Below are positions 30,444 through 62,727 of a DNA stretch of 64,000 nucleotides, in pieces. Source of the DNA: Haliotis rufescens (taxonomy: Eukaryota); contig NW_025964334.1 in the NCBI RefSeq assembly GCF_023055435.1, positions 1,860,001 to 1,924,000 of the forward strand. Direction: 5' to 3'. The notes below the pieces were generated by a model. That model was given only the letters and a program-made list of their open reading frames with translations. It made no database searches and was not told the origin of the DNA. Made by a program: the position numbers and the translations under genes. The first letter of the stretch is position 1. Each line of letters begins with the position of its first letter.

Positions 30444-31938
30444 CACAAAGAAAAATGTTAAGCACACCCCTATTTCTTAACCATGACAAATGGCAAAAAT
30501 CATGGCATTGGATGACTAACCACAGAAACTGGACGATGCCAATGTCATGGGATAGAACAAACATTTGACAACAAATAAAGAAGGTATTGGTGACATGGTA
30601 ACAGGTACTGTTTTTTACCTTAGACAATACCTCATCAAAGTATGGAGCTGCAAGATTAAGTAAACGAGTTAAGTTTGATGTTTCATGTGAAAATGGTCCT
30701 TAAAATCTCTACTTAACATGACACGTGAAACAGATCAGTAGCGGGTATATCCGCCACGTGCCCGGGTGACGCATTCCACCCTAGGTCTCATGCCTCCAGT
30801 CAGACGTTGGATCTGTTGATGGGCCAACAACCACTCCTGATGCAATGCCGCTTCCAACTTCCGTAAATCTTGTACAGGAGGATCTCGTGCCTGTATGCGC
30901 CGCCCCAGAATATACAAAACATGTTCAAGGGGGTTCAAATCTGGGCTCATTGCTGGCCAGGGTAAAGTCGTTATTGCATTGGCCCTCATGTAATCCACGA
31001 CTGCAGGCGAACGATGAGGCCTGGCATTGTCATCCATGTACTGAGGTCGAGTAGGAAGAGGGTGGTTGTCAAAATGATGAACGACGACTGGCCTCAAAAC
31101 GTCCCGGATGTACTGAGCCACTGTTGAGTTGCCCCTTATGGTGACCAAATCCAACCTGCAATCATGAGCGACACACCCCCTAACCATTACCGAGCCCCCG
31201 CCGTATGCAACAGTCGGTTTAATGTTCCTGGGGGTGTAGGCCGTGTTCCGGTGCCTCCAAACTCTCGTTCTTCCATCAGTGACGTGGAGCAGAAAGAGAC
31301 TTTCGTCTGACCAATGGATTCGTCTCTAAGTTCTCAGATTCCAGTTCTGTCACGCAATACACCATGCTAAACGAGCAGCTTTGTGGTGATCTCTCAACAA
31401 GGGACGCTTTATGACTCGTCTAGCCCTCAGTCCTGCTGCTTTCAGACGGTTCCTGACGGTTCTGGTGCTGAAACGACGATTGGGCAACCACAGCTGCTCC
31501 AGACGAGTCCTTGTTAAAAAGAGTTCTCGGCGTATGAGACGAAGAAGGTCCCTGTCTTCGTGATGTGTCGTCACGGGAGGTCTGACGGATCTGGGACAGT
31601 CCTGTACATCAGCGGTCTGGGCATGCATGCCGATTATTTGCCATCTTGTGGCGTTTGATAATCGCCCTCGTACCCTGGTCATACACTGTCATGGAATAAC
31701 TGTTTAAAACCGAGCTTAAGAAAGCAATTTTCACGTTTGGATATACTGCTTTTAGAGATAGGGAAGCATGCTGCACGGGCATACCATGCAGGGCACGTGA
31801 GCTTTCGTCACGCATGACTGATTACATCATTCGAGAAAACATAATTTTCCTCTTAAATATGTCTTTCATGATTGTAACAAATATTTGGACCAAACAGTAA
31901 TGAAATATATTAGGGTGTGCCTAACCTTTTTCTTTGTG
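30444..31938 (-). mobile_element. Defective Tc1/mariner (DD34E-type) transposon
   Basis: TA-flanked TIRs CACAAAGAAAAA(T/G)GTTA(A/G)GCACACCC; transposase pieces 31682-31350 (HTH, shortened), a WSDES motif near 31310, and 31187-30735 (DDNARPH..WPAMSPDLNPLEH..ARGGYTRY), broken by stops. Confidence 0.92.
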
Positions 31939-36968: not shown

Positions 36969-39900
36969 ATGAGAATGAAAAGAGGATCTAATTCTATGCG
37001 AGTCAGACGTCGCCAAAGTGATGCGAAATGGAGAGCTAGTGTTTCAAGTTGCTATGACACACTGAAGTTTGTCATCCCAGACAGCTGTAACCTACCAAGG
37101 AGAAAGTTTTCAAAGGTAACAAAATGATCTATAGTTTCAGCAGTAGACATTCATTCTAGATACTATAATTACTGAATTTAAAATATCTAATTTTTCTGAA
37201 CTTATTGTCTAGATTAGACAAAAAACTATGTTCAATTCTTAATTAATACTGTGACTCTAATTGCTTTTTTCAGGCTCTAATTCTACAAGAAACGGCAAAG
37301 CACATCAGGACACTGGAAGAAGCAGTGTCAACTCTCCTCACACAAGAAGGTATTTTTTCAAATAAGACAATTTAAAAAAAATTTTACCGGTACATAAATT
37401 TTTTAAATTAACTGATCATAACAGTGAATTCAACCGTTTATACCAGTTTGTGACTTTAGCCACACATGATCCAGAAGTATCTATCTGAAGCTTGGATTAC
37501 CATGTTTGTTTATTTGTTGTGTTATGTCTCTGTCAGCTAAATTCCAGTTTAATTAGAGCAGCTTGTAAATATTCAATGTATAAAAGTAGACATTTCTTAA
37601 ATCATGCTAATATATATTACAGATAATTAATTTGGTGGCTAATAATAATAATACTAGCTATGTAGTCAGTATATAGAGATAACCAGTACAACATCACTGA
37701 TAACAGGACCAATGAAATACTAAGAGGTTTTATTGCTTAGTTTTATGTTTTTGCATCGAATGCAATCTGAAAAAAATCACTGTTAAAATATCTCTGAATT
37801 TAAGAAAATAAGAACTTTAGAAAAATCCCAATTTTGTACAAAACAATGATTTATTCTTTTTCCAATTTGCTCACCAGGGGCTTGTAGGTTTTGAATAATG
37901 GATACATCTCTACTTAATGACCTAAACTGTTTTGTGAAACTTCATAGTTATGTCTTGGTGAAACAAATTTATGACATATTATTGACTTGGGCTGTTTTCA
38001 GCTAAGCTACTGAACAAGAGTGTTCTTTGGAAGACTGGCAAGCAGTGGGCGCCTGCAACCCTGGCACACATCAGAAAGGAGTTTGAGGAACAACAGGGCC
38101 AACTATTTGAGCAGTAAGTTATTTATAACCACTTTTTGGCAGTTATTATTTTCATAATGCTGATGTAAAGAAATAATTATCAATGAGGCTCTGTGGCTGA
38201 AAACCTCAAGGTCCTGAGATTCCCGTATTTCTTACATTGATACACCATGAAAATATAAATTTAAAATATGTATATCAATTTTAAAACCGTCAGCTGTTGG
38301 GATTACAACGTTATATATAACCACTTTTTCTCGGTTATTACATTCTTCAGGACCTTGTTGTGATACTGATGTAAAAAAATAATTATTAATGAGGTTCTGT
38401 CGCTGGAAAACCTCAAGGTCCTGAGCTCCCCAAGCGTTTCTTACATAAGTATGCCATGAAAATATAAAAAATTAAAATATGTCTATAAATTTAGAAATAT
38501 TCAAATTTTGATTGGTTTGATGACAACATTGAAAGCAGTCTTGAACGTTAACTGCTAGTTCGAAGGTGGAGTCTAGTGTTATATCTATTTTGGTCTAGTT
38601 AGCTTAGCTCATGAAAGTCTATGCCTAGAGAGTTTATACTACTGATAAGATGTTGTAGGACTTGTAAACTCAAATGTTTTTGACACTTAATGCGAAAGCA
38701 TATAATTGACACATATCAAGTGTTCCTTTGAAAGTTCATGAACCCCCAAACTATTTTAGCTGAGGGTCTATCAATCTTTCTGGGAGTCCAAACTCTTCCA
38801 ATTGAATTTGCTTGAATCAATTCATGTAAGACTTATTTTTTAATCAGTTGGGTACTGAACAAGTACAAGTATAGAGACATTTTGTTATATTTTGAATTTC
38901 AACATGTAGCCTAATCTAAATTGCTGCAGATCAACCCAAGGTCGTCGCCGTTACAGTATGCTAGCAGACATAGAGGAACAAATTCTCCACATGGCTGTTG
39001 ATCCAAGCCGTGTCACAGTTATCTCCCGTGGTGGCGGCACTCAAAACAAGACCAGCAAGTCAGGAACCGGCAAAGATAAGGGGAAGGGGAAAGAGGTGAG
39101 TGTCCCTCTGGTCTATGACGTACAACTATTTTCATCGAAACAACCGTGACGTTGACGTATGAGAAGTGATCAATCTGTACCAAAACATTGAAGCATTTCA
39201 GTTATGAACATGTATGAAAGTTCAACTAGATCAGATGGGCTACAAAACAAACTACTGAGCAATAAAACATTTTTTTATTAGTTTAAAATTTTGAGTAACC
39301 TAAACCAATTGTTGTTTTTTATGCCAGGACCTTTTATCGCTTACAGATTCTCTTAGATGTGCCCACAGGCAAGGGGCCAAACAAAATATGTAGTCATGGT
39401 TCAATTAAGGTTAATTCTTGAAACAAAAGTTTGAATAAATGTAATGAAACGTAGGCATTCTTGTTTTACATTTGCAAATTGATTATATAGTCTTGTCCAT
39501 GAAACAGAAAAATAATTGTTTGGTCTCAGAATGTAAATTCTTTCCTTCTTTTATCCCAGGTCTTTGTTTTCTTGAAAAAATATGGTATCACAAATATCTT
39601 TCAACTTACAAGCGTAACTTTATGTTGTGTAAATTTTCAAATGAAACTTCTAGTTGTGACTTGCTGATTGAAGAATTATTTGGGACTTGTTTTATTGGAC
39701 AGGTTCGTGTCAGGAGAAAAGCTAAGATTTTGATAAAGGATTCAACCAAGGTGTACGAAGAGCCACAGGCCCATTCCACCCCCTGCCCCAAGAAGCAGAG
39801 GAAACATTCTCACTCCACCAGCGTTCACGACTTCGAGACCCAAGAAATTATCCCTGTCATTTGTGAGAGAGTACCTGATGCAGACCTTCTGCCATGTATA

Positions 39901-42900
39901 GCTTTTCCTCCTGACTGCAAGTATGACATGTCCCATGATGTCCCTCTCACTACCCCGAGTAAACTGTGTTACCATGGGAATGAGAAGCTGTTCAGTCCTG
40001 TGGCTGAGTGTGGTTTCAACACTCCTGTCTATGTGAACCCCAACCCCCACAGGGTAGACACCAAACCCCCCATCACATCACCTCGCTTCAGCAAGGTGGC
40101 CAAACAGGTATAGATTTTAGTTATACGAGTTTTAAGCTTGAATGTAACAGCGATAGAAACTTAACCATTTTGGTCCACTAGTTCTAATAATGTTAACATA
40201 TAGCAACACACTTAATAATTGGCAAAACTCTGCTAGTCATTATGATACCTTAACTGTTGGGCAGTTTGGCAAGGACTACAGGACTAGTGGCAATTTCTAA
40301 CGCTGATGTGAGGGTCATTTACTTTCAGGGTGGTCTGATGATGAGGTTGTCACCAAAATTTAGTGGGATTGGGGGGCATATGAATAAAGTGACACAGTTC
40401 CATTTTAGAATAAAACAATTAGAAATTTGAAAATCATTTAGGGACTGGTCATTTATTATGGTGGGGGGTGTTGGCAAAATATGATACCGGTACACAAAAT
40501 TTAGGACTGAAACAAGCATACAGGACACTATTTACCTTTTTTTACAGGAATCTATAATGACTAAAATTTCAAATCATTTGGGTTGTTTTCACTGATCAGA
40601 CCGGTTGACATTTTTATTCAAATTCATACCAGTATATATTAAGGATAAAATTTTGTAAAAGTGCATGACAAATCTTGGAAAAATGACGATGATTTTTTTC
40701 CAAGACTTCATAAGCTTACTTTCATCTATAGAGTGTTCACATGTTTGTCTTTGTGTCTCCCAGCTTGAGTTCACCAGCGAGGATGTTCAGCCCCTCAGAC
40801 CCTCTTGTCCACATGACAAGATGAGCGAGATGACAAGTGTGTTTGGTTTCACTCCCATCAAGCTCCCACCAGAGTCAGGCACTGTGCCCCTTGACCTCTC
40901 CCATGCCCAAGCTACACAGGCAACTCCAACCATACAAGCACCACAAGGACTCACTCCGGCATTCCAGAGGAATTCATACCCACCACAGGTATGGGTGGAT
41001 CTATGTTAAGATTTTTTTGGCCACCATTGTTTTCAATACAAAAAAATGTAACCACCTCTTACAGTCGTAATGCGCGGTGTCAGTGCTTGGGATAAGAGGG
41101 GATATTTTGTCGTCTTTATAATTGTTGCTATCGGACAACTGAGGTATCCATCACTTTTTTAAATAGTATTTTTGTAATGCTTAGGGACCAACCATTTGAT
41201 ATTCCTGGGGGATGGGATTTTGTATCGAGTTTAGATATTTTATTTAAATCTATACCCTGAATTATTATTATTTTAAGAAAAAGACCTTGCCACAATGTAA
41301 TTTTTGTGGCAGGCAATTTCTTTCTGTTTTCCAACTGCCTGAAATATAATAATTTTGTCAAGATGTTTCAGAGATAATATATATTTTTTCAATGAAATCC
41401 CAGAGCCCCCTTCTCTCTCCTTCATTGTGCAAGTTGTATGTGTATTTTCTTTTGCCAGGGTGGCTTTGTATTAGGTGTTTGTAGTGGTCAGACTAAATAC
41501 AATGCAATTCATAAAAGACCTGTGAAGATCCGGGTTAGAACAGGTTTTCAGCAACCCATGCTTGCCTTAAAAGGCGACTATGCTTGTAATAAGAGGTGAC
41601 TAACGCGATCGGGTGGTCAGACTTGCTGACTTGGTTGATGCGTGTGTGGCCTTAAACAACAAACAAACACACAAGCAAGCATTTGATAAAGAACTTTTTA
41701 CCAAAAAGTTTGTTTCTTTTATATTCTAATCCATCAATTATAGTGCCAGTGGTTGGGAAAATAAAACTTCATTTTACACATACACCCCAAAAAGAAAGAA
41801 AAAGAAGTAGTAATAATTAGAAACCTTCTTCTGATTGTACCTCTTTTCTCTTGCGAGTTGAATCGTTGATCTGAAAATTTAAAGAACCTACCTTAATAGT
41901 TCTTCTCTGGTCAAGAATTTTGCCAGAATCATGGTTAAGAGATTTTGAACAAGATAATCTCAGATGTAATTAAGTCATTTGTTTTGATTGCCAGACTCCA
42001 AAGAGTGATGGTGACTGTCTGGAATCTGATGATGAGGAAACCAAGAGCCTTCTATGTTTCGAGACGTTTGAAATGCTTTCGGATGATGATGGTGTGCCAG
42101 AATGGGAGAGGTATGTCATACTGTCCAGGGCTGGGACGGGTAACTCACAGCGTTAGAAATTGGCACTATTCCTGTAGTCCTTGCCAAACTGCCCAATAGT
42201 TAAGGTATCCTAAGGACTAGTAGAAATTTGCCATTTATAAGGGTTTTGCTATATGTTATCTTTCTAAGGACTTGTGGACTGAAACAGTTTGTTTCTACCA
42301 TTAACTCAGGTACTCGGATCGGGAGGTTCCTGAATAGGACCCAGGTAACCACAGGACTACAGGACATATTGTTTGATGATGATAACAATTAATCCCCATG
42401 GTTACACTACAAGTCACTGATGTTCACATTTCTTTCTGACTACATGAATTCCTTATGACTTTTATAAATTTGAGTAAAGCTAAGCTTTAATCAACTTCAG
42501 TGTATATGCATGACCAAATCGTTTAATACAAGTATCTAAATAGTTCCCAATTGGACATTTTGTAACCATCTCTTGAGACTACGGGTCTTCTGCAACCCAT
42601 GCTTGCCGTAAAAAGTGACCATGCTTGTTGTAGGAGGCGACTAACGGGATTGGGTGGTCAGGCTCGCTGACTTTGTTGATGCATGTCATCGTATCCCAAT
42701 TGCGTGGATCAATACTCATGATGTCATTCACTGGATTGTCTGGTCCAGACTCTGTTACTTAGTTACAGTTACTTACAGACTGCCGTCATATAGCTGGAAT
42801 ATTGCTGAGTGAGATGTTAAACAACAAAAAAACAAAACAAAAAAACTAAGGGTGAAACGATAGAGCAAGGTCACGATTTGATACGTATCAAGATACATAG

Positions 42901-45900
42901 GTCGTGATACGCATATTTACGTCAAATCAAATGGAAACTTCTTGACAATAAATATTTCAGTGCAGGTTCAAAAGGTAAAGCAAGTCCTAAACACTTGTTT
43001 GTTGTGGTTATTTTTAGTAGAGAACATGAAACACTAGTTCCAACATCTTTATGGATATCGGACTGACAAAAACGCCAGGGGTCATTAAACCAGTAGTGAG
43101 TAATATTTTCAGCAAGTGTATCAACTTGTATCGATACAGAAAATGAAGGATCATGTATCTTATCACCACATGAAAACTTACTATGCACCGATGTATCATT
43201 TCACCCCTACTGCGTGCCGGTGCACCAAGGGGGTTGAACCCATTCCAGGTTAGAATAGGTCCCCATTAACCAATGCTGGGCATAAGAGGCAACCAAATTG
43301 AATGGGTGGTCATTGTCAGCGACTTGGTTGAGAGCGTGTCCTCGTACCCCTACAGGGTGGATCACTGCTCACAATATATTGATCACTGGAGATTGCTGAA
43401 CAGGGTTAGAAACTAACAGTTTTTGTCCACTAGTGCTTATAATGATAACATATAGCAAAACCCTAAAAATGGGCCAATTTCTACTAATCCTTAGGATACC
43501 TTTACTATTGGGCAGTTTGGTAAGGACTACAGGACTAGTGCCAATTTCTAACGCTGCTGAATGTGGTGTTATTACAACAACAAAGTTTTAGGCAGAATTA
43601 TGTTTACAAAAGGTTCAATCATTAGTTTAAAAATACCCAATAGACTGGACCCAAGGTAGTAAAAATATATATCAAAAGCTATCAGTGCCCGAAGTAAATG
43701 ATAACATTTTGGTTAATACTCAATCGTTAAAAAAGTTGTGCTCTCCAAACCAAATAATATTTGACTAAACACAGACTTAGGTCACGCAGGAAATTGAAGT
43801 AGATGTTATCAAGGAAGTTACCATCTTCCCGAGGCAAGAGAGTTAACTGACTTTAAAAGTCCAGTTTCCACACTTGCCGAACTAGGCTGGAATTACTGGG
43901 CTCGATCGTAGCGCCACCAATGGCTATTACCAGCTATGTCCCTTCTAAGCCTCTCCTATGGACCAATCAGATTCCACCTCTTGTATCACTTGCGTTTGCT
44001 TCACACACAATGGTGGCGCCCAGTCAGGACGATCTGATCGATAATCAAGATCTATATTGTGATAAAACGGGTCTTACATTGCGAAATGCATCAAATCACG
44101 CGAGCACCTGGATTAAAAACATGAAAAGATTTGGAAAATATCTGCTGACGAGTTGGTGGTGCACATGCTTTGCAAATCCTGCAATCGACCGAAATCTGCA
44201 CGACGGTTTACGAACCGGATTTCGATTTCGGTGCACGATTTTGATTGGGCTATGCATAAACTTGTTAGTCCAGGCAAAATGTAACTCCATAATACCAGCC
44301 TAGTTCGGCAAGGGTGGAAACTGTACTTTTAAAGTCAGTTAACTCTCTTGCCTCAGGATGATGGGAAGTTACAGATGTAAGAATTGTGGGAACCTTTTAG
44401 CCTCCCATTGAATGTTTTATTTTTTTGTGTATTTTAGGACGCCTGATAAGGACAAACTTGGACAAACATCTCCAGTGGAAGAAGAGCAACAGAAAGATCA
44501 GTGCAAGAGGATGTGAGTGTCTGGATTCCGTTCTTTGGCAGGGCTCATTTCAGCACACACAGGATTGCATTTGTCTTTAGGAAGGAATACTTCATTTCAT
44601 TTGGGGAGAAATGGTTTAAGGTTTCAAACTCTTTAAAACTTGTAGAATTGAAATGGCATTGTGAGGTTTCATTTGGAGAAATAAAATTGGAAAAGTTTCA
44701 TTTCAAGAAAATATTGACTTGATTGTGTGAGTGTTTTAGTTCTTTCATGTTTATTGTTTCATGAGTGATAGTGAAACTATTCATTGATGATCTTCTTTTT
44801 GTTGCAGAGCTTTTGGCAAAGGAACACACAGGGTGAGAAAATCCAGGGAACGCATTCCAAAGTGTAGGAAGAATCTAGAGAAGTAAGTATCTAATATCCC
44901 TTTGTGAATTTAATTAGAACTTGATGTTATGACACGAAACAAGTGGATGAAGATGCATCAGTTAATCACTCAGACTTGTGTGAAGATCCAGGTTAGAATA
45001 GGTCTCAGCAATCCATGCATGTTGTAAGAGGCAACTAACAGGATTGGGTGGTCAGACTCGCTGACTTGGTTGATGCATGTCATCGTATCCCAATTGCATG
45101 GATCAATGCTCATGATGTCAGTCACTCAATTGTCAGGTCTAGACTTGGATTATTTACAGACCGCCATCAGATAGCAGAATATTGCTGAGTGCTGCGTTCA
45201 ACAACAAACACTCAGACTTGTCCTATTGCTTGGTCTATTATCTAGAATCATGCATATCTTAATGATATGGCACCCCTCAGTCCCCTTTGCTGGACGACTG
45301 GCAGGAGTATGCAGGGAGATTTTATGATGCTTCATGTGTTTTGGTAGCCTAATGTGCGGAATGGGTCTAGAATGGGACATCATATCCTGTGAAATTTTTG
45401 AATTTTTTTATAGAAGTATTAGTTGCAGTCTGTGACTTTAGCTACCAGTCCTGAGTCTGAGTCGAGTAAACTTCTGTTCAGTCTCTTGAGTCTGAGGTAA
45501 TAATACTATGGTCCATACAATAACACTAACATCAACTGAAAATTATCCATGCTGGTAGATTCAAAAGTTTTTGGCACAAAATGGTAGGTGTCTCAGGGTT
45601 AGAAACTAACAGTTTTTGTCCACTAGTCCTTATAATGATAACGTACAGCAAAACCATTACAATGGGCCAATTTCTACTCGTCCTTAGGATACCTTTACTA
45701 TTGGACAGTTTTCCAAGGACTATAGGACTAGTGCTAATTTCTAACGCTGTGTCTTACAAACTTGGCCAAGTCTATTAAAATAATTAATACCCAGAACATT
45801 TCGCATAGCATGACAGATTTTTGAGTGCATCTGTAGTTACTTGCCTTTACCACTTTCTAGCCATGCATTACTGTATGTTGCAATCAATGACTGACCACCC

Positions 45901-48039
45901 TTGTGTGCATGTTCACTGAACCCTTCCTCTGCACAACAGACTGTATTCAAACCCCGAGGATGTTGATGGGAAGGAACTGCCTGTTATCACTGGAGTGTTT
46001 GACAAAGATGCCACAGGTTCTGATTTTGATGGGTATGTTTACAAATTACATGCAAGAAACCAATTAAATATATCAGTTTTTCACTATAGCGACTATTCTG
46101 AGGCTCAAGTCCCAGTTATATATTTGGTTTGGTCTAGCAAACCCAGGTAATCATTGTCCATATAATCATAACACTAATATCTGCTGAAAATTATTCTAGG
46201 ACCTCTATAGCTACCACATGATGTTAGTATTTTTGTCATTAAAATTTATTATGAAAGTGTATTTCAAATAATTTTTATTAGAATATATTGGTTTGTGTTT
46301 GTTTTTTAACAAATATAGATGAGGTATAGTATAATAGAGTCTTGTGATTCTTTTTTTCTAACTGATGAAATATTTTGATGACATTTAGATAATGCTGTTA
46401 TTCGATATCTTTTATGATTTAATCTTAAACTATCTGACAATGACACCATTCAAGAATGGCAGCTGAGCCTATCAGTGACAATTAATTATTGATCCCCTTT
46501 ACTGCAGGTATTTCTTGTTCTATCGGCAAGTGGCCGAGATGCTGCAGCAGCACATGAGTCGGACTGAAATTGCCTCGCCGTCAGTCGCAGTCACAGTCTC
46601 CCAGATGTGGAACGATATGTCCAGTGATGACAAGGAAACGCTTGCAACTCTTGCTGCTTTGGAAGGGAGTCAAGATTCAAATTCTAGCTCCGGGCTCAGT
46701 GATGATTTGCAAGAGCTTGACGTCAAACCACTAGACTCTTCACATTTCATTGATGGTACTTACTTTATTTAAACTTGAATCTTTACTAGCTTTTGCCGCA
46801 CATATTGCTTGAAAATTGCAAGCATTTATAACACATGACATGGTTGACATAACTCAACCTGTTTTTGAACAAAATAATGATTTTTTCCAAATTTGCCTGC
46901 CTGGGCACTTAGTTCAGAATCCTCGATATATCCCTGGCAGATAAAATCTCTAATTCTTGTTATAGGACATGTTTAATTTGATGTTGCAGCTTCAAAGATT
47001 GGTATTTTCAAGAGAAATCTCCAAGGTGTACCAAATGTCCCCAGTCTTCCGACTGTGTCAGAAACTGCACAAAGAGTTCTCGGAGCAGTCCCCGGTAGTC
47101 AGGACGTTCAGGAAGTCCCCAAGAGTTACCTTCCTTCTCTCGATGACTGTGTTGACTCGTTGGAACACAGCACTGAGGAGATGGCCATCATCAATCTGGC
47201 ATTTCAAGACCAGGAAGGACTCTCACATCTGGGATTTGACCGCACTGAGGTAAGCATTTATAACACACATGACTTTACCTGTTTGTGGTGAAAGTATTAT
47301 GGATGACAACTTGTTAATTGTTTGTTGTGATGTTTAAAGGCTACTTCTTGCTCCTACATTGCCCCTGGTGGTTAAAGCGTTCCCTCGTCACGCCGGAGAC
47401 CCAGGTTTGATTCTCCACATGGGTACAGTGTGTGAAGCTCATTTCTGGTGTTCCCCGCCGTAGTATTGCTGGAATATTGCTAAAAGCGGCGTAAAATCAA
47501 ACTCACTCACTCACTCACCTTACATTCACCTGATGAAGAAGTAGCCTCAAAGTGTTGTTAAAAACAAAAAAGAAGTTGTTATCCATAAAAGTTTCATGTA
47601 TTCAACTCAAATGCTGTTCAAATCTGTGTCAAAAGGACCACAATGAATCAAGTATTTAGGATATAAACGATGAGGGGGACGTCATTTACGTCATCAAGCT
47701 GCAAACGTATGTGATGTCATAACAAAACAATGTTTTATCATGAAATAAATCATGTCTCGTTCTTCATTGTTTTTTGCGATTTGTCACGTAGCTGTCTTGT
47801 ATAACATATTAATTAACAGTTTAGAAGGAATATATCATTGTTCCAAATTAGGTTATGTGTTCATGTGCTTCGTACTTCCCCTGCAGGCTAATCAAGAGTT
47901 TACGACAAGCATTGCAGCAAGCAATGACTACTCGGGCTCGGAGACCTCACAGATAGTGCCGGACATCACGAACATCATCAAGAGGGACGTCCTCCTCAGC
48001 TCTAGTCAGTCCCCCACAGCTGTCACAGCCCATACCTAG
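36969..48039 (+). CDS. STRA8: STRA8-like (STRA8/MEIOSIN family) bHLH + HMG-like transcription factor, about 716 aa
   Basis: Exons 36969-37115, 37274-37349, 38002-38113, 38930-39095, 39703-40107, 40764-40988, 41995-42110, 44438-44512, 44808-44882, 45940-46032, 46508-46755, 46990-47249, 47887-48039; all GT-AG, phase-consistent, 2151 nt, no internal stop. N-terminal RRRQSDAKWRASVSSCYDTLKFVIP..FSKALILQETAKHIRTLEEAVSTLL; C-terminal DFDGYFLFYRQVAEMLQQHMSRTEIASPSVAVTVSQMWNDMSSDDKETL. The gene model is firmer than the name. Confidence 0.75.
38125..38490. repeat. Local ~170-190-bp intronic duplication
   Basis: ATAACCACTTTTT..CTGATGTAAA..AATAATTAT.AATGAGG.TCTGT.GCTG.AAAACCTCAAGGTCCTGAG occurs twice. 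Confidence 0.8.
40148..40305. mobile_element. ~155-bp MITE (CAG(G/C)GTTAGAAA TIR)
   Basis: Family copies at ~36350-36500, 40148-40305, 42148-42300, 43401-43556 and 45594-45749. Confidence 0.8.
42126..43560. mobile_element. Nest of MITEs and SINE B copies in a STRA8-like intron
   Basis: The 14700-type element is interrupted by the 155-bp MITE (TAACT duplicated), followed by SINE B 42585-42845, hAT-type MITE 42847-43209, a degenerate SINE B, and the 155-bp MITE 43401-43556 (CTGAA duplicated). Confidence 0.75.
43822..44363. mobile_element. Non-autonomous DNA transposon, ~70-bp TIRs, 9-bp TSD (Mutator-like)
   Basis: CATCTTCCCGAGGCAAGAGAGTTAACTGACTTTAAAAGT.. and its inverse at the right end; GGAAGTTAC at 43813-43821 and 44364-44372. 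Confidence 0.9.
44976..45210 (+). mobile_element. SINE-like family B with target-site duplication
   Basis: Family B consensus; CACTCAGACTTGT occurs at both ends. Confidence 0.85.
45594..45749. mobile_element. ~155-bp MITE with 5-bp TSD
   Basis: CAGGGTTAGAAA ... TTTCTAACGCTG flanked by TGTCT on both sides. Confidence 0.85.
47362..47517 (+). mobile_element. SINE family A
   Basis: Family A body and ACTC tail. Confidence 0.85.
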
Positions 48040-48147
48040 TGCTGAAGGTCACTCACACAATGTACTTGCAGTGTGAATCAGTTTTCGTATAATGAGGTTG
48101 CAATTGTGTAAAGTAAATTGGTTTATTAGTTTTTAATCTCTCTTGTC

Positions 48148-48153
48148 AATAAA
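48148..48153 (+). terminator. Candidate proximal polyA signal of the STRA8-like gene (others at ~48233, ~48455, 51216)
   Basis: AATAAA about 110 nt after the stop codon. Confidence 0.3.
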
Positions 48154-50439
48154 TTTCAAACATTGGCCATTTTCCATGATATTTAGAGTAACACCTCCTA
48201 GGAGGAACACTTTGTTTGATATTCCTATGAGGAATAAATCCGAAATTCATGACAATGGCAGCTCTTTCACATAATGGAACGTCCAAACACCTTATAGTTT
48301 GTCCATCTGGTACAAAAAATATCATGTATAATTCATAAAGGTATTGCCTTTTCAAGTATTGGGTGAAATGAACAGATATTGGTTAACAAGAATTGGTGTT
48401 GACTGGAAAATTAGGATACAAATTCAATTTTCAAAACTGGAAAAAAAGTTTTGAAATAAACCATTCTACAATTGTAGTGGATATTAATACATTTTCAGTT
48501 TTGTGCTTAATTTTAGAAGATTTAGTTTAACTTATCAATATCCTGAGCAGAATGACATTCAGAAAGGATGCATGGGACATTAAGTGCCTAATCCACACCC
48601 AGTGTTTATGAAGGCATCAATCTGCAGTATGACATGTTGTTGGTTACCCGAGAGTTGGACATGTACACTGATTGCCTGGACAAGGTTCCTGGTGCTAGAG
48701 GAAACTGAACTAAGTGAATTAGTGTAGAGTTGTGTGTTCAGTTTTGACTGAATGAGATGGCGCTGTGAGTACTATGAACAGAACCCATGAAGATCTGGAA
48801 GAATAGGTCTTCAGCAACCCATAGGTCTTCAGCAAAAGGCGACTATGCTTGTCGTAAGAGGCAACTAACAGGATCAGGATTGAGTGGTCAGGCTTGCTGA
48901 CTTGGTTGATGCATGTCATCATATTTACGGACCGCCATCATATACCTGCACTATTGCTGAGTGCGGTGTTAAACAACAAACAAAGCGTGTACTCTTCATC
49001 TGTTTGAATTACAAAGCACAAGGACCTCTTCAGTTACTGATTGATTACTAAAGCAAACTGTTCCTGGTTCAATGTTTGACAGTCAAATGTACCACAATCA
49101 ATGAGGTGAATCTTTTTCTACGCCATCTTAGAGTAAAAGTGCAAGTTCAGTGTTGTGAATTATAATAATCTCCACAATTTCATCTCTTTTTCTGAGCACC
49201 AAGAATCCTCATGATTCATAAAGGAAAGAGATGATCATGATGATAATTTGTACCAGGGAACATGCAAGGTTGTTTTGAACCATCACCTGAGATTATGCAA
49301 GTTTTAAGAAATTGTAATTGTTTGTTTCCAAGGGCTGTTAGTGAGGCTATAGAGTAGGCAATGTGTGCCAAATGCTTTTAAGTCATCAAGTCCAAACTTG
49401 TATTTTGGCATTATTTTTACTAGATTTAGGGTTAGTATATGGACTAGAATAGCTGATCAGTTGCCATTTTTCTGGAATCCAACACTCTGGCATCAAACTA
49501 GTGACTAAAGTTGCACACTGGTAGTTTTTTTGTGAAGTAGATTAAAAGGACACATGGTTTACTTGTTGATGTTACTCAGTAACACAATTCCTCAGTGTTT
49601 GTCTCAGTTTCTGTCGCCTCATTTAAATAGGGTATATATACTTGCTGACACTGGGCTTACAGAATTGTTATGCTGACGCTGGTGTCATATTGTTATTGTT
49701 GATGCTTGTTACCATAGTTACTATGTTGGGCAAATGTATCCACTGATATTTCCAAATAGTAGTCATCACGTGTTGCCATTGATTAACAAGTTTGTGTTGG
49801 TGTTTTCGGATTATCTTGGATATATTTGGTCAGCATTATTGTTCCTATTTATTGACGTGAAGGATGGGAACACCTTCACTGAAAGGTTAATGCCACTCTT
49901 CATGTAGTGGAAGAGGACTGCTGCTTGAACTAGCATGGCTTGAGTACCAACTGTAGATGGTAGTTTTGGGACGTTTTCAACATTTCAAGATTAATCTCTG
50001 GTTTTAAAAACCTATTGATTTATAAGGATCATCAGTGAGAACATAAAAATGAGACATTTAGAGCATTCTTTCTCAATATCTTGCTTGCAAAAAACAACTT
50101 ATGAAATAGGACACCTTAAAAGGTCTTTTGCAATATTCCAAACAACAAGAAACCTTGTCTGTTTCCAGATTTTCATTATCTTAAGTTTTAATCTCCATAA
50201 GTTCAGAAGAATAGACTGGAGAACAATCTATCCAAGATATCTTAATTCTATTAATTGATTCCTTGGTTGAAAACTGAATGATCCATTTAGTTTGCTCTAA
50301 AGCAATGTAAGTTCAAGCAGTTTGTTCACCTGGCAATATTCAAAGGACTGTGTTATTATTTTGTTTAAAACCCATACATGTTAAGCAATCCTTTTTTAAG
50401 GCAGGTGGTTTTGCTGTAATTGACTTACAGGAGAGTCCT

Positions 50440-52986: not shown

Positions 52987-55367
52987 TTAGCCTTTGCCCT
53001 TGCTTCGCTTGCTGTTATCCTTGCATTTGCATTTCTTCATTAAGCTGCGGAAAATATTCTTTCTTTTGGATCCTTTGGAGACATTGACCTTCTGATCAAT
53101 CAGCTCATTCTTTTCCTCTTTCTCATCTGGGAACACAAAATTCAGTTTGTTAGGAAAACGCGAATAAAACAGTATTCACTCAGTTGGTTGCTTTGAACAT
53201 CTTTCAAGCTGTAACCGGAGACATGGAATGAACAGTTATTCTACCATGATCAGGACATGTTTGAGTGTGCAAGTGATTATTGCTTAACGCCGCATCAACA
53301 ATCTTGCACCTATACGCGGACACGGACCTGGGGTAGAATGTGTCCCCGGCACCCCATTGCTAGCCGTAAGACTACATTGAGAACCCTTGGTGATTCTGGA
53401 TAGATTGACAACACTCTATTGCTTGTCCTAAGAGGCGACTAAATGGATCGGGTGGTCAGGCTCGGTGACTTGGTTGATTGCATGTCAGTATCCCAAATGT
53501 GTGTATCAACGATTCTCATGATGGCAGTCACTGAATTGTCTGGCCAAAACACTATTATTTACAAATCGTGGTTATATAACTGGAATATTATTAAGTGTGG
53601 CATCATACAACAGACAAATCACAAACATATATTATCAATATTAGAAAAGGTACCTTACAACCCTAACAGACTGTCTCGGTCGTCCAGAGCGTCCCCCCGG
53701 AGAGCGGAGGGTCGTAGGTTCGATCCGGGCGCGTCATACCAAAGAGTTAGTGAGTGAGTATGGTTATACGCCGCTTTTAGCAATATTCCAGCAATATCAC
53801 GGCGGGGGACACCAGAAATGGGCTTCACACATTGTACCCATGTCGGGAATCGAACCCGGGTCTTCGACGTGACGAGCGAACGCTTTAACCACTAGGCTAC
53901 CCGACCGCCCCTCATACCAAAGACGTGTAAAGAATGGTACTTGTTGTTACCCTGCCTGGCACTGACATTAAGGGGCTAAAACAAGTACTGGTCGGCTTAG
54001 AGTCAGTATGCCGTGTCTGAGTACGGTATTCATGTTAAACTGAGGCATGGTATCTCAGTGTGCTAGCACTATAAAATCGGCATTAGTCCGGACTAGTTCA
54101 AGCAGCCACACACACGTGCATGCACGTTGCATTATAAGTGCAATAATCTTGGACGCGGGGTTAAACCCCATTCCACCTCACTGCCAACCCTAGCAACCCG
54201 GGTGTTGAACCTAAATTATGGCACTCGCCTTAGTCGCCTCATATCGACTAATGCATGACCTAACTATATAACACATGCACCAGTGCAACCTATTATTGAA
54301 AAAATGCAACCTAACGTTTATGTCTACATGCACTATTAATTTATGTTTTGTTTGTTCGTTGTTTAACGCCACACTCAGCAATATTCCAGCTATATGACGG
54401 CTGTCTGTAAATAATCGAGTCTGGACCAAACAATCCAGTGGTTGGCATGTTGAGCATCAATCCACGCAATTGACATATGATGACATGCATCAACCAAGTC
54501 AGCGAGCCTGACAACCCGAACATTAACTCAGGGAGTCAACAAATCCGCTGGAAGACAACCACCTGTTTGATGGTTGAATTCACATTCAATAAAAGATCTG
54601 ATGATCCTTAAAGAGTATAAAAACCAATACAACAGAAGTTCAATTGTCATAGTCAAAACGTCAGTCCTAGTTTTAAATTCACCTTCCTAGGACTACCATT
54701 TGGCACGAACCAATAACATTCTTTGAATAAGAAGCAGACCCCCAGCCATACCTTCGGCGGTTGACAAGGCGGTGGAGTTTTCCTCTATGGTGGGACCCTC
54801 GCCTGAGGCGGGTATGTCCAGATCAAAAGCAAGTTTGGGAGAGTCCATGCCCTCCTTGGATTGTCCGATGAACATGGATGATTCACTACTGGTGAGAGAC
54901 ATCGATGACCCGCGTCTGAGAGGCAGATGTGATATGTAGCCATAAGGGTCATCCTGGAGATACTTGATCCGATCCAGCCAGTTGTCCCATTTAGAATTCC
55001 CCTCACGCACGGTGGATAACTCGAAATAGCGGGATCGAGTGTGTCTTGCGGACACTTTCAAGATAAAGTCTTCTGGCACGGTTGAGATGTCTACTGATCT
55101 GAGAGGAATGATCCACTTTAACTCCATCCCGTCAACTGCAAGGTCGACATCGACGGTAGAGGTGATGGCAGGATCTTCCTTCCAGTTGAGAATGTATCGT
55201 CTGCCGAGTAGGAGATGGTCTGGAGACAGGCCCAGCACGACCTGCTGTAGAGCATCGCCACATTTGTCCAGCTCTACAAACGTTGCCTCGAGGAGGACAA
55301 TGTCTTCAAGGTCGCTGTATTCATCCATTAGCAGCAGTTTCTGGAGAGGACCCTTGATTTGATCCAT
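52987..55367 (-). CDS. FAM71/GARIN (Golgi-associated RAB2 interactor)-like protein A, about 251 aa
   Basis: Coding exons 55367-54752 (GAAG|GTATGG, phase 1) and 53126-52987 (DEKEEKNELIDQK..KGKG*); acceptor just upstream of 55401 and a candidate non-coding exon ending at 56520 (GTAAGT). Motifs GPLQKLL..DEY, LEATFVEL...G, VVLGLSPD.LLL, MELKWIIPL.SVDIS, RYFEL, W.NW...I..L. Confidence 0.7.
53670..54183 (+). mobile_element. SINE family C with a SINE A copy (53746-53911, -) nested inside
   Basis: 12-bp TSD TCATACCAAAGA at 53734-53745 and 53912-53923; GGTTCGATCC B-box in the host head. Confidence 0.88.
54344..54520 (-). mobile_element. SINE-like family B, 3' half
   Basis: Reverse complement of the family B tail and body. 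Confidence 0.82.
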
Positions 55368-56599
55368 GGTGTTCTGTCTAGACTACTTTGTGGATAACGT
55401 CCTGGAAACACAAGGTGGTCACACAAGGTATAAACTATCTAATATAGGTCGGGGGTCACTGCTTCAAGATATATTTTTCAGAACATCCAGCCTGAGCAGC
55501 GAACAATTTATTTGGTATTCTAAATCCCAAGATATTTTGTCCAATAATTTCTGGAACATTTTTTTTATTCAAAAAACGTACACAGACGCACGCGCACACT
55601 TCTTTTTATCGAAGCAAAATAGATTGTCCCAGAAAATTCTTGACAAAATAAATATACATCAGGCTGTTGAAAAAAAGAAATTGCACAAATATTATAATGT
55701 GTTTTTCTTTGAAATAATATTGAGGCTTATACTTACATTTTAAAAAATATCTGGTTTTGCAGCTGTAGCTGGGAAAAATATCTAATCAAAGAATATAAAA
55801 TGGTCGGTCCCTAACTCTATATGTTTACGGTTCCCCCCACGAATTCGAATTAACAAGGTTTCAATGTACAGAGGTAATCAAAGTTTCCTGAGAAATCTGA
55901 GAAGAAAAATGTCATGGCATTACTTCTAAGCGGTTTCCAGGCCTTGGATGCGTTTAGCTTTATATAGTCAGTCGACTAAATGGAATTGGTGGTCAGGCTC
56001 GGTAAATAGGTTGATTGCGTGTCATCATATCCTAATTGCGTGGATGCTCATGATGTCAGTCACTGGTTTTGTCAGACCCGGACTCTATTTATTTACAGAC
56101 CGCGGCCATATAGTTGGAATATCGCTGGTCTGCGGCGTTAAACAACAAACAAATAATGTTGAGGATGAGTGAATCACGGCGAGGTATCGAACCCGGACCG
56201 GGCCTTCGGCGGGACAAGCGAACACCTTAAGTAGATTCAGTATTCTTTATCTCCAAAAAATATAAGCATCAGTTCTTTTTTCAATAGATATAATCTACGA
56301 TTAATATACAAAGATTTATCTATAATACGCGATGCACTACTTCTTCCATGGTATATCAGTAATTGCGTCATGTAAGGTTTGTTGACAAACAATAAAACTC
56401 ATCATCTGGTAGAATACTGTAATAATCAAAATTAAACAACGCGCATCTTTTTACCTGATTGTTTAAACTCGAATAGGTGTACAAGGATTCTCGGAGCCTT
56501 TTAATGTAAAACAACTTACCGAGATCTGGCAATATAAATGACTTCTGTCTCTTAGCGATGCCACCTGGACGAATGCTGCAGATGTGTGCACTCTGATTA

Positions 56600-56633
56600 T
56601 GACGTCATGTTACCACATGTATTGATGACGTCA
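56600..56633. promoter_or_regulatory. Twin palindromic CRE sites upstream of GARIN-like A
   Basis: TGACGTCA at 56600-56607 and 56626-56633. Confidence 0.6.
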
Positions 56634-56761
56634 AGATTATTGTGCTTTTTCACATCACTGAATCACTCTAATGTGTCGTCAAATTATGAGTTGATTCGTA
56701 ACCTGTGTGTTCCCGCTTCTACAATAACAGTTGGAAAGATGACTCTTGTGAATAGATACTA

Positions 56762-58176
56762 TACTGTCGGGCAAAAGAAAGTAGACACTCATCTCTGATG
56801 GTGGCGAAATACACTCTTCAAAAAAAGAAACGCATAGGTGTTTTGAGAATTCCAATTAGATTTTTTTTCCCAGCAATCGTCATAAAGACAATTCTTATGT
56901 TTGATTCCCGTTAATCATGTCATGTGTGTTGTGCATTGCGCGCAAAACACATCTCAAAATGCTTTTTGTATGCTTCAGCACAATGCATGTGCAAAGTGTT
57001 GGAAACAAGGGTAGAGACACTGACTATAAAATACCGTACAAAATTCATCAGTTCATTACGAATTTTCTGACGTGAACGGAGATCGAAAAATGCCAAGATT
57101 AACTGCAGCTGACCGAAATATCGCCATTGGACGTTTGGAACCAGGGGAGTCCCAGTCTGCCGTTGCAAGACACTTCAACGTTCACCAAAACACCATATCT
57201 CGACTATGGGATCGATATACCCACACTAATTCGATTCAAGATCATCCCAGAAGTGGAAGACCAAGAGTGACCACCCCTGCTCAGGATCGGTACATCCGGT
57301 TGCATCACCTTCGGAATCGATTTGCTACAGCAACGGACACTGCAGGACAAGTGCCTGGTATGCGAAGAATTTCCGACCAAACCATCAGAAATCATCTGAG
57401 GGAAGTGGAAATTCGAGCGAGACGACCAAAAGTTGGACCTGTCTTGCGACGTCTACACCGTCAACGACGTGTCCGGTGGTGCAACAGAGTACAGGCATGG
57501 GATCTCAGGAACTGGCGACGCGTTTGGTTCAGCGATGAGACACGTTATCTTCTTCAACGACGGGATGGAAGACAACGTGTATACCGACGTCGACATGAAC
57601 GTTTTGATCTCAACCCGATTGAACATTTGTGGAACGAACTTGATCGACGCGTCCGTCAACGTCACCAGCGTCCCCACACTGGCACAACACGCCAACGCCT
57701 TACAGGAGGAATGGCGAAGAATTCCCCACGAAAAAATCCGAAGACTTGTGCAATCTGTGCCAAGGAGGTGTCGAGCAGTGACGGCTGCAAGAGGTGGTGT
57801 GACCAGGTTCTGACCATGACGCCCCCTTGTGGCTACACATGTGCAATGACTGACCTGAATTAATGCTGACAATGACGACAATACTTTTGTCGATCACTGT
57901 GTCTAATTTAATTTGATTGTGTGTAGATACTTTTACATCCGCTTAATAAATATCCTTATTTTTTAACTATGCGTTTCTTTATTTTGAAGAGTGTATGAAA
58001 CAACCAAGAAATGGTTATTCGATGGTGATGTATTTTATACGGGTATCAGTTGTATTTTGGACCTTAAGTTTGCATCGTTTCGGCGATTGTTTTCAGCCTA
58101 CTATATTTTTAATAATGTTTGTAATTTTTTAGTCAAATCCAATTTTCAAGTGTATACTTTCTTCTGCTCGGCAGGG
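56762..58176. mobile_element. MITE hosting the Tc1 insertion
   Basis: Inverted ends CTGTCGGGCAAAAGAAAGTAGACACT / AGTGTATACTTTCTTCTGCTCGGCAG. Confidence 0.7.
56812..57993 (+). mobile_element. Internally deleted Tc1/mariner transposon
   Basis: TA-flanked TIRs CACTCTTCAAAA.AAAGAAACGCATAG; transposase MPRLT..HTH..WRRVWFSDETR joined directly to DLNPIEHLW (second catalytic Asp region missing), then a frameshift to ..ARGGVTRF. Confidence 0.93.
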
Positions 58177-59265
58177 TTTTTTCTAACGATATCATGCATT
58201 AGCAATGGATCTGAAAATCTGTTAGGGAGATTTTCACAATGATTTCCGTATGCTAACTTCAGACGTGTCTCCATGATTAAATTACTCACGTTTATTCATG
58301 GCGTTAATGAAAAACAACAGTAAATTGTAATATTTTGTAAAGAGTCTTGTGCCCAGAACGTGCACCTGCAACACAGATATGATGTGCAGCACCAGGGTTC
58401 AGACTTGTCCAGTGGATTACGAAAAATAATATTAAAGAAAACAAGTGAAAATTTAAGAATTTTAACTTTAATTCTTTAAGGGTTATCTTTGTAAAAACAC
58501 AAGACGAAAAGTGCTGAAATGTTGTATAATAGGATGATAATTTGACCCCCACTTGATCATCGGTACCTATACACTACTCTTCTCCAAATCTAAGAGGCTC
58601 AAAGAGATGACGTTTTGGTAGTAAAAGGCACAACAATGAGCTTCAGATATAATCAGGACAAATAGAATTGATTAATTTTCTTAGGATTGCAAAGAAAGTA
58701 ATTTTGTCAGAGTGGTCGAGCTGAAACGTGGTGTAGAGTATTAGGCTTATATATATATTTTTTATGCATAGGTCAACTTTGGCTAGTGAATGTGATATCA
58801 GTACGAACCTGGAATATCCCATTATCAGAAACTGCCGCATCAAATGCGCCAATACGTTTAGCAATGTTTGGTACAGTGTCGATGTCCTTTGCGTTTATGC
58901 CGTGATATGGCTGTAATATTGCTAAAAGTGGCGCAGAACCATACTCACACACTCACTCACTCTTTACATGTATGAATACGACAATTAACAGCCACATTTT
59001 CTTTACCTGACGGCGAAAGATTTCACTGCACCTCAATTTACCTGGTAAGAAACAGTTCTTTGTCGCAATTTGTTGTTATTGAAATAATAAAATATCTTCT
59101 TAGTCAACCCCCAAATTGTGTTGTTATTTTGACACGATTTTGAGACAATGTATACAGACACGATTATCAGCATGTTTTGTGGCAAGAATTGTTCACGTGA
59201 ATCTCACGGAGGTGATCATCGAACTTGGGCTTCTACGTCAACGGGAACCTTACGAGTGTAGAATA

Positions 59266-59289
59266 TGACGTCATAATGGTATGACGTCA
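59266..59289. promoter_or_regulatory. Twin palindromic CRE sites upstream of GARIN-like B
   Basis: TGACGTCA at 59266-59273 and 59282-59289. Confidence 0.6.
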
Positions 59290-59382
59290 CAATCACAGTC
59301 CATCAATAATGATTCCGGTGAGGTGACAACGTATAGCATGACCTGTAGATTCAACAAATTTACAAACAACGCAACTCGGTTC

Positions 59383-62300: not shown

Positions 62301-62727
62301 AAAGGCATAGACAGTGTTTTGTTTGTTGTTTAACGCCGAACTCAGCAATATTCCAGCCATATGACGGCGGCATGCTAATAATCGAGTTTGGGCGAGACCA
62401 TCCAGTGATTGATATTGTGAGCAACGATTCACGTCGTCGGGGTACAATGACACGCAATCAACCAAGTCGCCGAGCCAGCATGGTTACTGGGGACAGATTC
62501 GAATGCAGAATCCAACAGGTGCAGGTATACCATGAAACCTTACAACACAACTCTCGATTAACTCGACTCATCAGTTTGAGATGATGTAGCTTATAATTAT
62601 ACACCATGGCCTCGTATTGGCTGTGTTGAAGTGAGTAACTTTATTGACATTTTTTTCAGGGAGCTCAATCGTGACGATTCCGATGACAGCATAACGGATT
62701 TAGTCAAAGAATTCGCTCAACCAAAAA
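59383..62727 (+). CDS. FAM71/GARIN-like protein B, paralogue of A; 3' end probably beyond the window
   Basis: Exons 59383(or 59338)-59690, 60615-61347, 62173-62219, 62660-62727 (phases 2, 0, 2, 1). GRVAKLLKRGDY, VLEAPCFQL...G, VFIGLT, VDLDVEGMELVCSAPLRFIRF, WYFEM, LWTNWLEMI align with protein A. Confidence 0.68.
59712..59974 (-). mobile_element. SINE-like family B, full length
   Basis: Reverse complement of the consensus, ending CCCCGGATCTTCACGGGTC. Confidence 0.88.
61478..61747 (+). mobile_element. SINE family C, 5'-truncated
   Basis: Near-identical to 53912-54183. Confidence 0.8.

Follow-up and report, generated by a model that had tools for sequence, protein, structure and literature searches.

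A bHLH-plus-HMG gene of the abalone Haliotis rufescens and its probable kinship with vertebrate STRA8 and MEIOSIN

A 64-kb stretch of the genome of the abalone Haliotis rufescens (G000:C556:1860001-1924000), called the window below and used as the reference for all coordinates, carries a 13-exon gene on its forward strand at 36969-48039. The product combines a domain of the basic helix-loop-helix (bHLH) type with a downstream domain that resembles a high-mobility-group (HMG) box. In vertebrates, STRA8 and MEIOSIN each carry a bHLH domain at the N-terminus and, downstream of it, a domain of HMG or HMG-like type (PMC13637641), and an earlier inspection of the DNA letters (here, the sequence-only reading) had proposed that the abalone locus is an intact STRA8-like gene. 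STRA8 has been called vertebrate-specific (PMC4574967), as that reading had also said, and a comparative paper of October 2026, which covers vertebrates only, treats the age of the MEIOSIN-STRA8 axis as a gap in knowledge (PMC13637641). The open-access literature searched yielded no account of a STRA8 or MEIOSIN homologue in an invertebrate, nor any mention of the accession numbers of the orthologues described below.

The exon model was rebuilt independently from the sequence and was then checked by script. All 12 introns are bounded by GT..AG, the exons contain no in-frame stop, the seven split codons are all sense codons and the reading frame is unbroken over every junction. The exons sum to 2151 nt, corresponding to 716 codons and a TAG stop (48037-48039). 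The rebuild reproduced exactly the 13 exons, the 716 amino acids, the start at 36969, the end at 48039 and the exon at 46508-46755 that had been claimed from the sequence alone. Furthermore, the peptides quoted at that time were located in the model: RRRQSDAKWRASVSSCYDTLKFVI in exon 1, FSK|ALILQETAKHIRTLEEAVSTLL across exons 1 and 2, ATLAHIRKEF in exon 3, and the HMG-like peptide FDG|YFLFYRQVAEML...SQMWNDMSSDDKETL across exons 10 and 11. The intron after the bHLH loop (...FSK|ALIL...) is in phase 0 and the intron within DFDG|Y is in phase 2. A 12-exon model of 691 amino acids was dropped after RNA depth at ~44806-44882 and the conserved PKCRK motif had exposed exon 9.

Public annotation covers only part of this gene. 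When the exon translations were compared by BLAST, exons 1-8 proved 100% identical to the uncharacterized protein LOC124149789 of H. rufescens (441 amino acids; P0045), which consists of the residues through exon 8 followed by M and a stop, the donor having been read through into TGA. The overrun lies at exon 8 (44438-44512; P0045 residues 417-440). Exon 9 (44808-44882), which encodes a basic PKCRKNLE motif, is missing from this model and is included in the RefSeq protein of H. rubra (P0043, 479 amino acids), which then ends prematurely. RNA contigs and orthologues place the HMG half in the gene, and the RefSeq models of the two Haliotis species are thus truncated, with the HMG half omitted.

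Logan contigs from four coded runs (X1, X2 and X4 from organism A and X3 from organism B) were placed on 42060-48059; their depth is no measure of expression level. The joints 46755|46990 and 47249|47887 were found in all four runs, and these two of the junctions whose presence in RNA had been proposed as a check on the gene are thus present. The contigs that carry them have lengths of 2822 nt (X2), 3038 nt (X3), 3287 nt (X4) and 838 nt (X1) and, being spliced, derive from RNA. Those of X2, X3 and X4 carry exons 11-13 plus 1550-1574 nt upstream of exon 11; since exons 1-10 total 1490 nt, this extension fits those exons together with a short 5' untranslated region (UTR). Contigs of the same depth lie over 44460-44512 (exon 8), ~44806-44882 (exon 9) and 93 nt within 45860-46059 (exon 10), and a contig piece ending at 44882, the end of exon 9, occurs in the four runs. 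Together, the upstream extension and the same-depth contigs on exons 8-10 place the bHLH and HMG halves on one mRNA. At the other end, the contigs reach 566-1055 nt beyond 48059, and the 3' UTR extends at least over 48040-48625. The exon 11 domain occurs as a single copy in the 1.33-Gb abalone assembly by a single-sequence six-frame search, which a very divergent copy could escape. The gene is real, single-copy and transcribed, and the earlier claim of an intact gene with a stop-free 13-exon reading frame was borne out, the spliced RNA contigs showing that it is transcribed.

The bHLH half is encoded by the first exons. Exon 1 (36969-37115; P0045 residues 1-49) contains the ATG, an atypical basic region (RRRQSDAKWRAS), helix 1 and the loop, and exon 2 (37274-37349; residues 50-74) contains helix 2 (ALILQETAKHIRTLEEAVSTLL). 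Exon 3 (38002-38113) encodes a post-bHLH module that is kept in molluscs. Single exons by reference, P0045 and orthologues returned from databases served as search queries. Exon 1 alone gave a partial match to Pfam HLH (E=0.016); matches of single exons are only partial because introns split both domains of the protein. P0045 scores 31.8 bits on Pfam HLH (PF00010), for which the cut-off is 20.7, and so passes. An AlphaFold2 model built from an alignment of 32 mollusc sequences has a helix at residues 11-33, a loop, a helix at 49-77, a beta-hairpin at 80-92 and helices at 95-113 and 122-131, with predicted disorder beyond about residue 150. The predicted local distance difference test score (pLDDT) is 88-96 at residues 51-110, above 90 in the helix at 49-77 and about 90 in the hairpin and helix of exon 3. 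Residues 10-78 of the model superpose on bHLH-Zip folds, with USF2 at Z 7.2 (root-mean-square deviation, rmsd, 2.1 A over 66 residues) and Mad-Max at Z 6.7, followed by MITF, CLOCK-BMAL1 and MYC-MAX; USF2, MAX and MITF together span Z 6.6-7.2. No convincing match in the PDB was obtained for the module at residues 80-147 (Z <=4.7). Foldseek searches of the PDB gave only weak E-values for the bHLH and HMG models alike, and VIA-align was clearer. As modelled, the N-terminal part thus has the fold of a bHLH domain in which helix 2 is extended, followed by a conserved structured module of ~70 residues.

Prediction with two copies of residues 5-150 gave a score of 0.43 against 0.00 for the best control and passes the mark of the tool, which in calibration was reached by 21 of 30 proteins solved as pairs and by 0 of 23 solved as single chains. 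The three runs share at least 38% of contacts, the partner has a pLDDT of at least 50, and symmetric contacts fall at residues 56, 60, 63, 67, 70 and 74; helix 2 of exon 2 is a predicted homodimer interface. This prediction supports homodimerization of the bHLH domain, and the pass may be a memory of solved bHLH dimers. In its fold at residues 10-78 (Z 6.5-7.2, rmsd ~2 A) and in being predicted to pair symmetrically, with heptad contacts, through helices 1 and 2, the domain resembles the bHLH-Zip factors USF, MAX/MAD, MITF and MLX. Unlike these, the mollusc protein lacks the Glu-Arg pair that reads the E-box, and it adds the post-bHLH module and the HMG domain. The atypical basic region, RRQSDAKWRAS, is kept in 29 of the 32 family members, and the Pfam HLH match begins only at position 13 of the profile.

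The HMG half is encoded by exon 10 (45940-46032; LPVITGVFDKDATGSDFDG), which leads into the domain and whose RNA depth corresponds to 93 nt of contig, and by exon 11 (46508-46755), in which the HMG-box-like three-helix domain (~46509-46670) is followed by an acidic LSDDLQELDVKPL motif. Exon 11 alone matches Pfam HMG_box_2 (E=0.0037) and HMG_box (E=0.0086) with 16.9-18.4 bits; these scores miss the cut-off, in part owing to the division of the domain between exons 10 and 11. Only in Octopus does the HMG domain pass Pfam (29-30 bits); the full-length orthologue there scores 29.1 bits on HMG_box_2 and also passes HLH in the same protein. A mollusc profile matches the HMGB3 box (E=0.006). The AlphaFold2 model of exon 11 has three helices, and its best Foldseek matches, with weak E-values, are HMG boxes. 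In the VIA-align comparison with 48,161 PDB representatives, the top 30 were all HMG boxes (Z 4.5-6.9), led by SSRP1 and SOX11 at Z 6.9 and followed by HMGB1, SOX2, BAF57, SOX9, UBF, LEF1 and TOX. Exon 11 is thus modelled to carry an HMG-box fold, and RNA contigs and orthologues place it in the same polypeptide as the bHLH domain. Its three-helix fold and weak sequence similarity to the HMGB3 box are shared with HMG-box proteins (SSRP1, HMGB1-3, SOX and UBF); it differs from them in having DFDGY in place of the canonical N-terminal PKRP-type strand and in the sub-cut-off Pfam score of the abalone domain. To our knowledge, an N-terminal bHLH domain in HMG proteins is found only in STRA8 and MEIOSIN, and we know of no other family in which a bHLH domain stands with an HMG box in one animal protein.

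Orthologues were collected by an exhaustive phmmer search with exon 11 and by three word-indexed searches, and the named orthologues are all from molluscs. They comprise gastropods (Lottia, Haliotis, Gigantopelta, Batillaria, Littorina, Nucella, Aplysia, Biomphalaria, Physella, Elysia and others), bivalves (Solemya, Mytilus, Pinctada, oysters, unionids, Mya, Mercenaria, Dreissena, Mactra and Argopecten) and a cephalopod (Octopus). The proteins are 550-750 amino acids long and are labelled hypothetical, uncharacterised, 'BHLH domain-containing' or 'HMG box domain-containing'. Beyond molluscs where named, the phmmer search listed unnamed fragments, one protein with five HMG boxes and three apparently unrelated proteins. 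The 716-amino-acid product of the abalone gene is probably a nuclear transcription factor and has orthologues throughout molluscs.

Between the two domains, short motifs recur in a linker that is otherwise predicted to be disordered; they were counted over the 32 family members from the alignment. Exon 4 (38930-39095) encodes a conserved GRRRY..L.DIE helix and then a Lys/Gly-rich disordered part, and exon 5 (39703-40107) encodes 135 amino acids that are specific to Haliotis and predicted to be disordered (pLDDT <50). The conserved FGFTPIKLP of exon 6 (40764-40988) includes FTPIK at 40848-40862, which fits the TPxK consensus of cyclin-dependent kinases (CDKs); 30 of 32 members have the corresponding F[ST]P[VIL]K. 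Exon 7 (41995-42110) encodes an LxCxE motif and its acidic tail (KSLLCFETFEMLSDDD), LLCFE lying at 42049-42063. In 30 of 32 members, [LI]xCxE with an acidic tail occupies the homologous position and agrees with the ELM pattern for binding to the RB pocket; the core LxCxE motif occurs anywhere in 11% of shuffled sequences. With its hydrophobic residue and acidic tail, the stretch resembles the pocket-protein ligands of this type in HPV E7, SV40 large T, adenovirus E1A, cyclin D and STRA8. Other conserved elements of the family are FTPVKLP, PKCRKRLE, DFDGY followed by the HMG helices, and LSDDLxELDVKP. On the alignment, TPxK, LxCxE with its acidic tail and PKCRK are thus kept mollusc-wide inside the linker.

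Beyond the HMG domain, exon 12 (46990-47249), with RNA joints on both sides in four of four runs, encodes predicted disorder with QxVP-type motifs, and exon 13 (47887-48039), reached by the joint 47249|47887, encodes the C-terminal SQIVPD (QIVPD at 47950-47964) and the TAG stop. Recurrent Q[IV]VPE-type motifs are found at the C-termini of the orthologues. The short Q-x-V-P-[ED] motif is repeated in the disordered C-terminal part (exons 12-13, for example at 47950-47964), Mytilus having as many as about eight copies, and it may serve for docking. With the acidic C-terminal motifs, the conserved parts of the protein number seven, the others being the bHLH domain, the post-bHLH module, TPxK, LxCxE with its tail, PKCRK and the HMG-box fold.

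A link to STRA8 is indicated by the Pfam family PF23175 (bHLH_STRA8), which was matched at E<=0.01 by 26 of the 32 members and is the sole specialised bHLH family matched at that level by more than one member. Lottia (27.3 bits) and Pinctada (25.1 bits) exceed its gathering cut-off of 25 bits, and precomputed database Pfam assignments give PF23175 to two Saccostrea species. As a control, 10 canonical bHLH open reading frames (ORFs) of the abalone, with HLH scores of 64-80 bits, yielded one PF23175 match (13.6 bits, E=0.07). Genome-wide PF23175 matches of 17-21 bits were considered as other bHLH genes and were rejected, being copies of a repeat with a chance ORF. This repeat is dispersed on other contigs (L001-L004, L006, L008 and L009), and its chance ORF (...HRRTSQPRRRGTRMNLFNATANEGKQN...) imitates the basic region of STRA8. 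In six-frame genome searches it gives spurious PF23175 matches of 17-21 bits, by which automated annotation could be misled. From the chance matches and the model coordinates, the basic region of PF23175 appears to read approximately RR.SQ.R.R.T....LFN. The mollusc RRRQSDAKWRAS seems to align to the same positions of PF23175, both being without the Glu-Arg pair of E-box-binding bHLH domains.

Structural comparison in the Atlas pointed in the same direction for both domains. With Lottia residues 5-133, a chordate STRA8 cluster came first, at a template-modelling (TM) score of 0.60 over 109 residues, the next being MLX at 0.49 over 73 residues. The cluster has 154 members, 96% of them with PF23175. 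With Lottia residues 415-498, the same cluster was again first (TM 0.56; next 0.38). A further indication comes from the LxCxE stretch. The C-terminus of mouse STRA8, translated from a printed single-stranded oligodeoxynucleotide, reads ...LLKCLETFDDL (DDDDAMLLKCLETFDDL), and this motif was shown to interact with RB1 and p107 and to set the timing of meiotic entry (PMC10600341). The corresponding stretches are NLICLETFDTDD in Lottia, NLLCLETFDVLD in Gigantopelta and SLLCFETFEMLSDDD in the abalone, and LICLETFD of Lottia resembles LKCLETFD of mouse STRA8.

STRA8 shares with the mollusc proteins the N-terminal bHLH domain with a non-canonical basic region, the subsequent acidic stretches and HMG-like domain, the LxCxE followed by TFD and acidic residues, and the position as top structural neighbour cluster for both domains. 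However, the mollusc proteins have about double its length (550-750 against ~330-390 amino acids), their LxCxE precedes the HMG-like domain, and they add the motifs FTPVKLP, PKCRKRLE, LSDDLxELDVKP and QIVPE. Mouse MEIOSIN has 589 amino acids, with the bHLH domain at 10-70, the HMG box at 484-534 and a long disordered linker between them (PMC13637641). Vertebrate MEIOSIN (BHMG1) thus resembles the mollusc proteins in the N-terminal bHLH domain, the long disordered linker, the HMG box in the C-terminal half and a length of ~590 amino acids, and cephalopod orthologues have an HMG box that passes Pfam; it is unlike them in that LxCxE is not reported for MEIOSIN in the papers cited here. No MEIOSIN-specific Pfam family was matched; layout and length suit MEIOSIN no less well than they suit STRA8.

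The abalone gene is probably a molluscan member of the bHLH-plus-HMG family represented in vertebrates by STRA8 and MEIOSIN, the homology being at the level of the family, and it is possibly a pro-orthologue of both. The link to STRA8 is drawn from several lines that are independent of one another but indirect. Several observations weigh against it. P0045 itself scores 17.6 bits (E=0.004) on PF23175, below the cut-off of 25 and below its own HLH score, and the abalone controls were all single-exon, high-scoring and class-A-like, with no MAX, MLX, USF or TCFL5-type (group-B) control among them. The Atlas results are rated as leads only, with feature-based scores <0.9. LxCxE is internal in molluscs versus C-terminal in STRA8, and short motifs can converge. 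Among 1.84 billion representatives, the exhaustive phmmer search with exon 11 gave no named relatives outside molluscs, and neither STRA8 nor MEIOSIN of a vertebrate was among its matches. Only molluscs came out of the three word-indexed searches, although such searches cannot exclude distant kin. The distribution known to date, molluscs plus vertebrates, is patchy. Finally, no element resembling a retinoic acid response element was found near the gene, the window containing one RGKTCA direct repeat, far from the gene, against 0.7 expected. Of the sequence-only reading, the intact transcribed gene and the bHLH domain followed by an HMG-box-like domain, in the order of STRA8 and MEIOSIN, have stood. 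Kinship with STRA8 itself fared less evenly: PF23175, the Atlas neighbours of both domains and LxCLETFD speak for it, whereas the abalone score of 17.6 bits (<25) and the phmmer search without a vertebrate protein speak against it.

The same observations bear on the other explanations that can be offered for the locus. That the 716-residue frame is an artefact of joining two genes, a bHLH gene ending after exon 8 and a separate HMG gene downstream, would agree with the RefSeq models of H. rufescens (441 amino acids) and H. rubra (479 amino acids), which lack the HMG half. It is nevertheless extremely improbable, as the RNA contigs of four runs link exons 9-13 and reach ~1550 nt upstream, equivalent to exons 1-10 and a short 5' UTR, the frame is continuous at all junctions, and both halves stand in a single protein in Lottia, Batillaria, Aplysia, Solemya, Biomphalaria, Mytilus and Octopus. 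A more serious objection is that the gene encodes a mollusc-specific factor of unrelated function, in which the bHLH domain, HMG box and LxCxE were gained independently and the likeness to STRA8 and MEIOSIN is convergent. The confinement of detected relatives to molluscs, the sub-cut-off PF23175 score of the abalone protein, the generic HMG boxes that are the sequence and fold neighbours of the HMG domain and the un-STRA8-like position of LxCxE would all be in keeping with it. Four features would, however, have to coincide, namely the domain order, the affinity to PF23175 relative to the controls, the STRA8 cluster in first place for both domains and LxCLETFD; in addition, the combination of bHLH and HMG in one animal protein is not known outside STRA8 and MEIOSIN. 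Convergence is accordingly considered rather unlikely.

If the kinship is real, the gene could instead be an orthologue of MEIOSIN (BHMG1) specifically, with STRA8 a later vertebrate derivative. The layout of mouse MEIOSIN is that of the molluscs, with 589 amino acids, bHLH at 10-70 and HMG at 484-534 (PMC13637641) against mollusc lengths of 550-750; the HMG box of Octopus passes Pfam, and Shimada et al. hold that the HMG-containing MEIOSIN is the conserved core. PF23175 is, however, a model of STRA8, the Atlas neighbour of both domains is the STRA8 cluster, and LxCxE with ETFD is a feature of STRA8, which makes this narrower assignment improbable. As for the ancestry of the family to which the gene is assigned here, a tentative possibility is that the molluscs retain an undivided, ancestor-like form of STRA8 and MEIOSIN: a single homodimeric bHLH-HMG factor, binding RB through LxCxE and gated by CDK. 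The two-factor axis of vertebrates would then go back to a duplication with division of labour, RB docking being kept by STRA8 and the canonical HMG box by MEIOSIN.

In the mechanism proposed for the gene, the protein would dimerize through the predicted bHLH interface. A partner gene of the same architecture (MEIOSIN-like) was not found by the single-sequence six-frame search of the 1.33-Gb assembly with exon 11, which a divergent one could escape; as this search showed no second HMG-domain gene, a homodimer is likely. DNA might be bound by the atypical basic region and the HMG-like domain together, RB-family pocket proteins might be docked through the putative LxCxE, and phosphorylation by CDK at TPxK might control the protein. 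In this way, the protein could tie the G1/S decision to a transcription programme of germ cells, after the model of STRA8-RB and STRA8-MEIOSIN at meiotic entry in the mouse, and it is from this analogy that a germ-cell and meiotic role is suggested.

The sequence-only reading had proposed that the STRA8-type switch may predate the protostome-deuterostome split, and this can reasonably be inferred. With moderate confidence, the gene is assigned to the STRA8/MEIOSIN kind as a new member from invertebrates or as a pro-orthologue; truncated or unnamed public models mask it. A conserved bHLH-HMG-LxCxE gene across gastropods, bivalves and cephalopods makes the origin of the switch testable in invertebrates, is a candidate regulator of entry into meiosis in farmed molluscs such as abalone and oysters, and raises the possibility that RB coupling at meiotic entry is ancient. 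A practical correction also follows, in that two Haliotis RefSeq models hide the HMG half and all of the orthologues are labelled as uncharacterised.

The introns of the gene contain a number of repeats. A foldback element resembling a miniature inverted-repeat transposable element occupies 43815-44370 in intron 7, with 81-nt terminal inverted repeats (43815-43895 and 44290-44370) that are 91% complementary and 394 nt apart; the depth of RNA contigs over it is very high. A 148-codon open frame at 43857-44300 was rejected as an exon, as it sits within this element. Intronic repeat pairs that are 84-91% identical were found at 41540-41645/42581-42686, 42619-42751/45013-45145 and 43401-43556/45594-45749, with a further repeat at 47260-47660. 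These repeats yield recurring pseudo-ORFs, and the summed contig depths at them, of up to ~300,000, indicate abundant transcribed repeats.

Elsewhere in the window, a GARIN/FAM71-like gene pair at 52987-62727 was considered as a clue to synteny, human GARIN paralogues sharing chromosome arms with STRA8 and MEIOSIN, and was dropped, its large ORFs having no Pfam match at E<=10. No match to PF12480 (GARIL_Rab2_bd) was found in the 64-kb window, and the large ORFs at 54693-55367 (reverse strand) and 60673-61392 (forward strand) share only a 34-residue similarity (E=1e-4). Remnants of Tc1/mariner-type transposases lie at 57072-57863 (forward strand) and 30735-31187 (reverse strand), as shown by matches to HTH_Tnp_Tc3_2 (39.5 bits) and DDE_3 (31.8 bits). 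An intronless ORF of 1114 codons at 19350-22694 (forward strand) has no Pfam match even at E<=10, and the sequence around it is rich in purines (GC skew 0.26, AT skew 0.28 at 20001-22000); its product may be a low-complexity or repeat-encoded protein. The composition is also odd at 1-2000 (GC 0.63, GC skew +0.48, AT skew -0.51) and at 12001-14000 (GC 0.53, skew +0.28), which suggests simple or satellite-like repeats.

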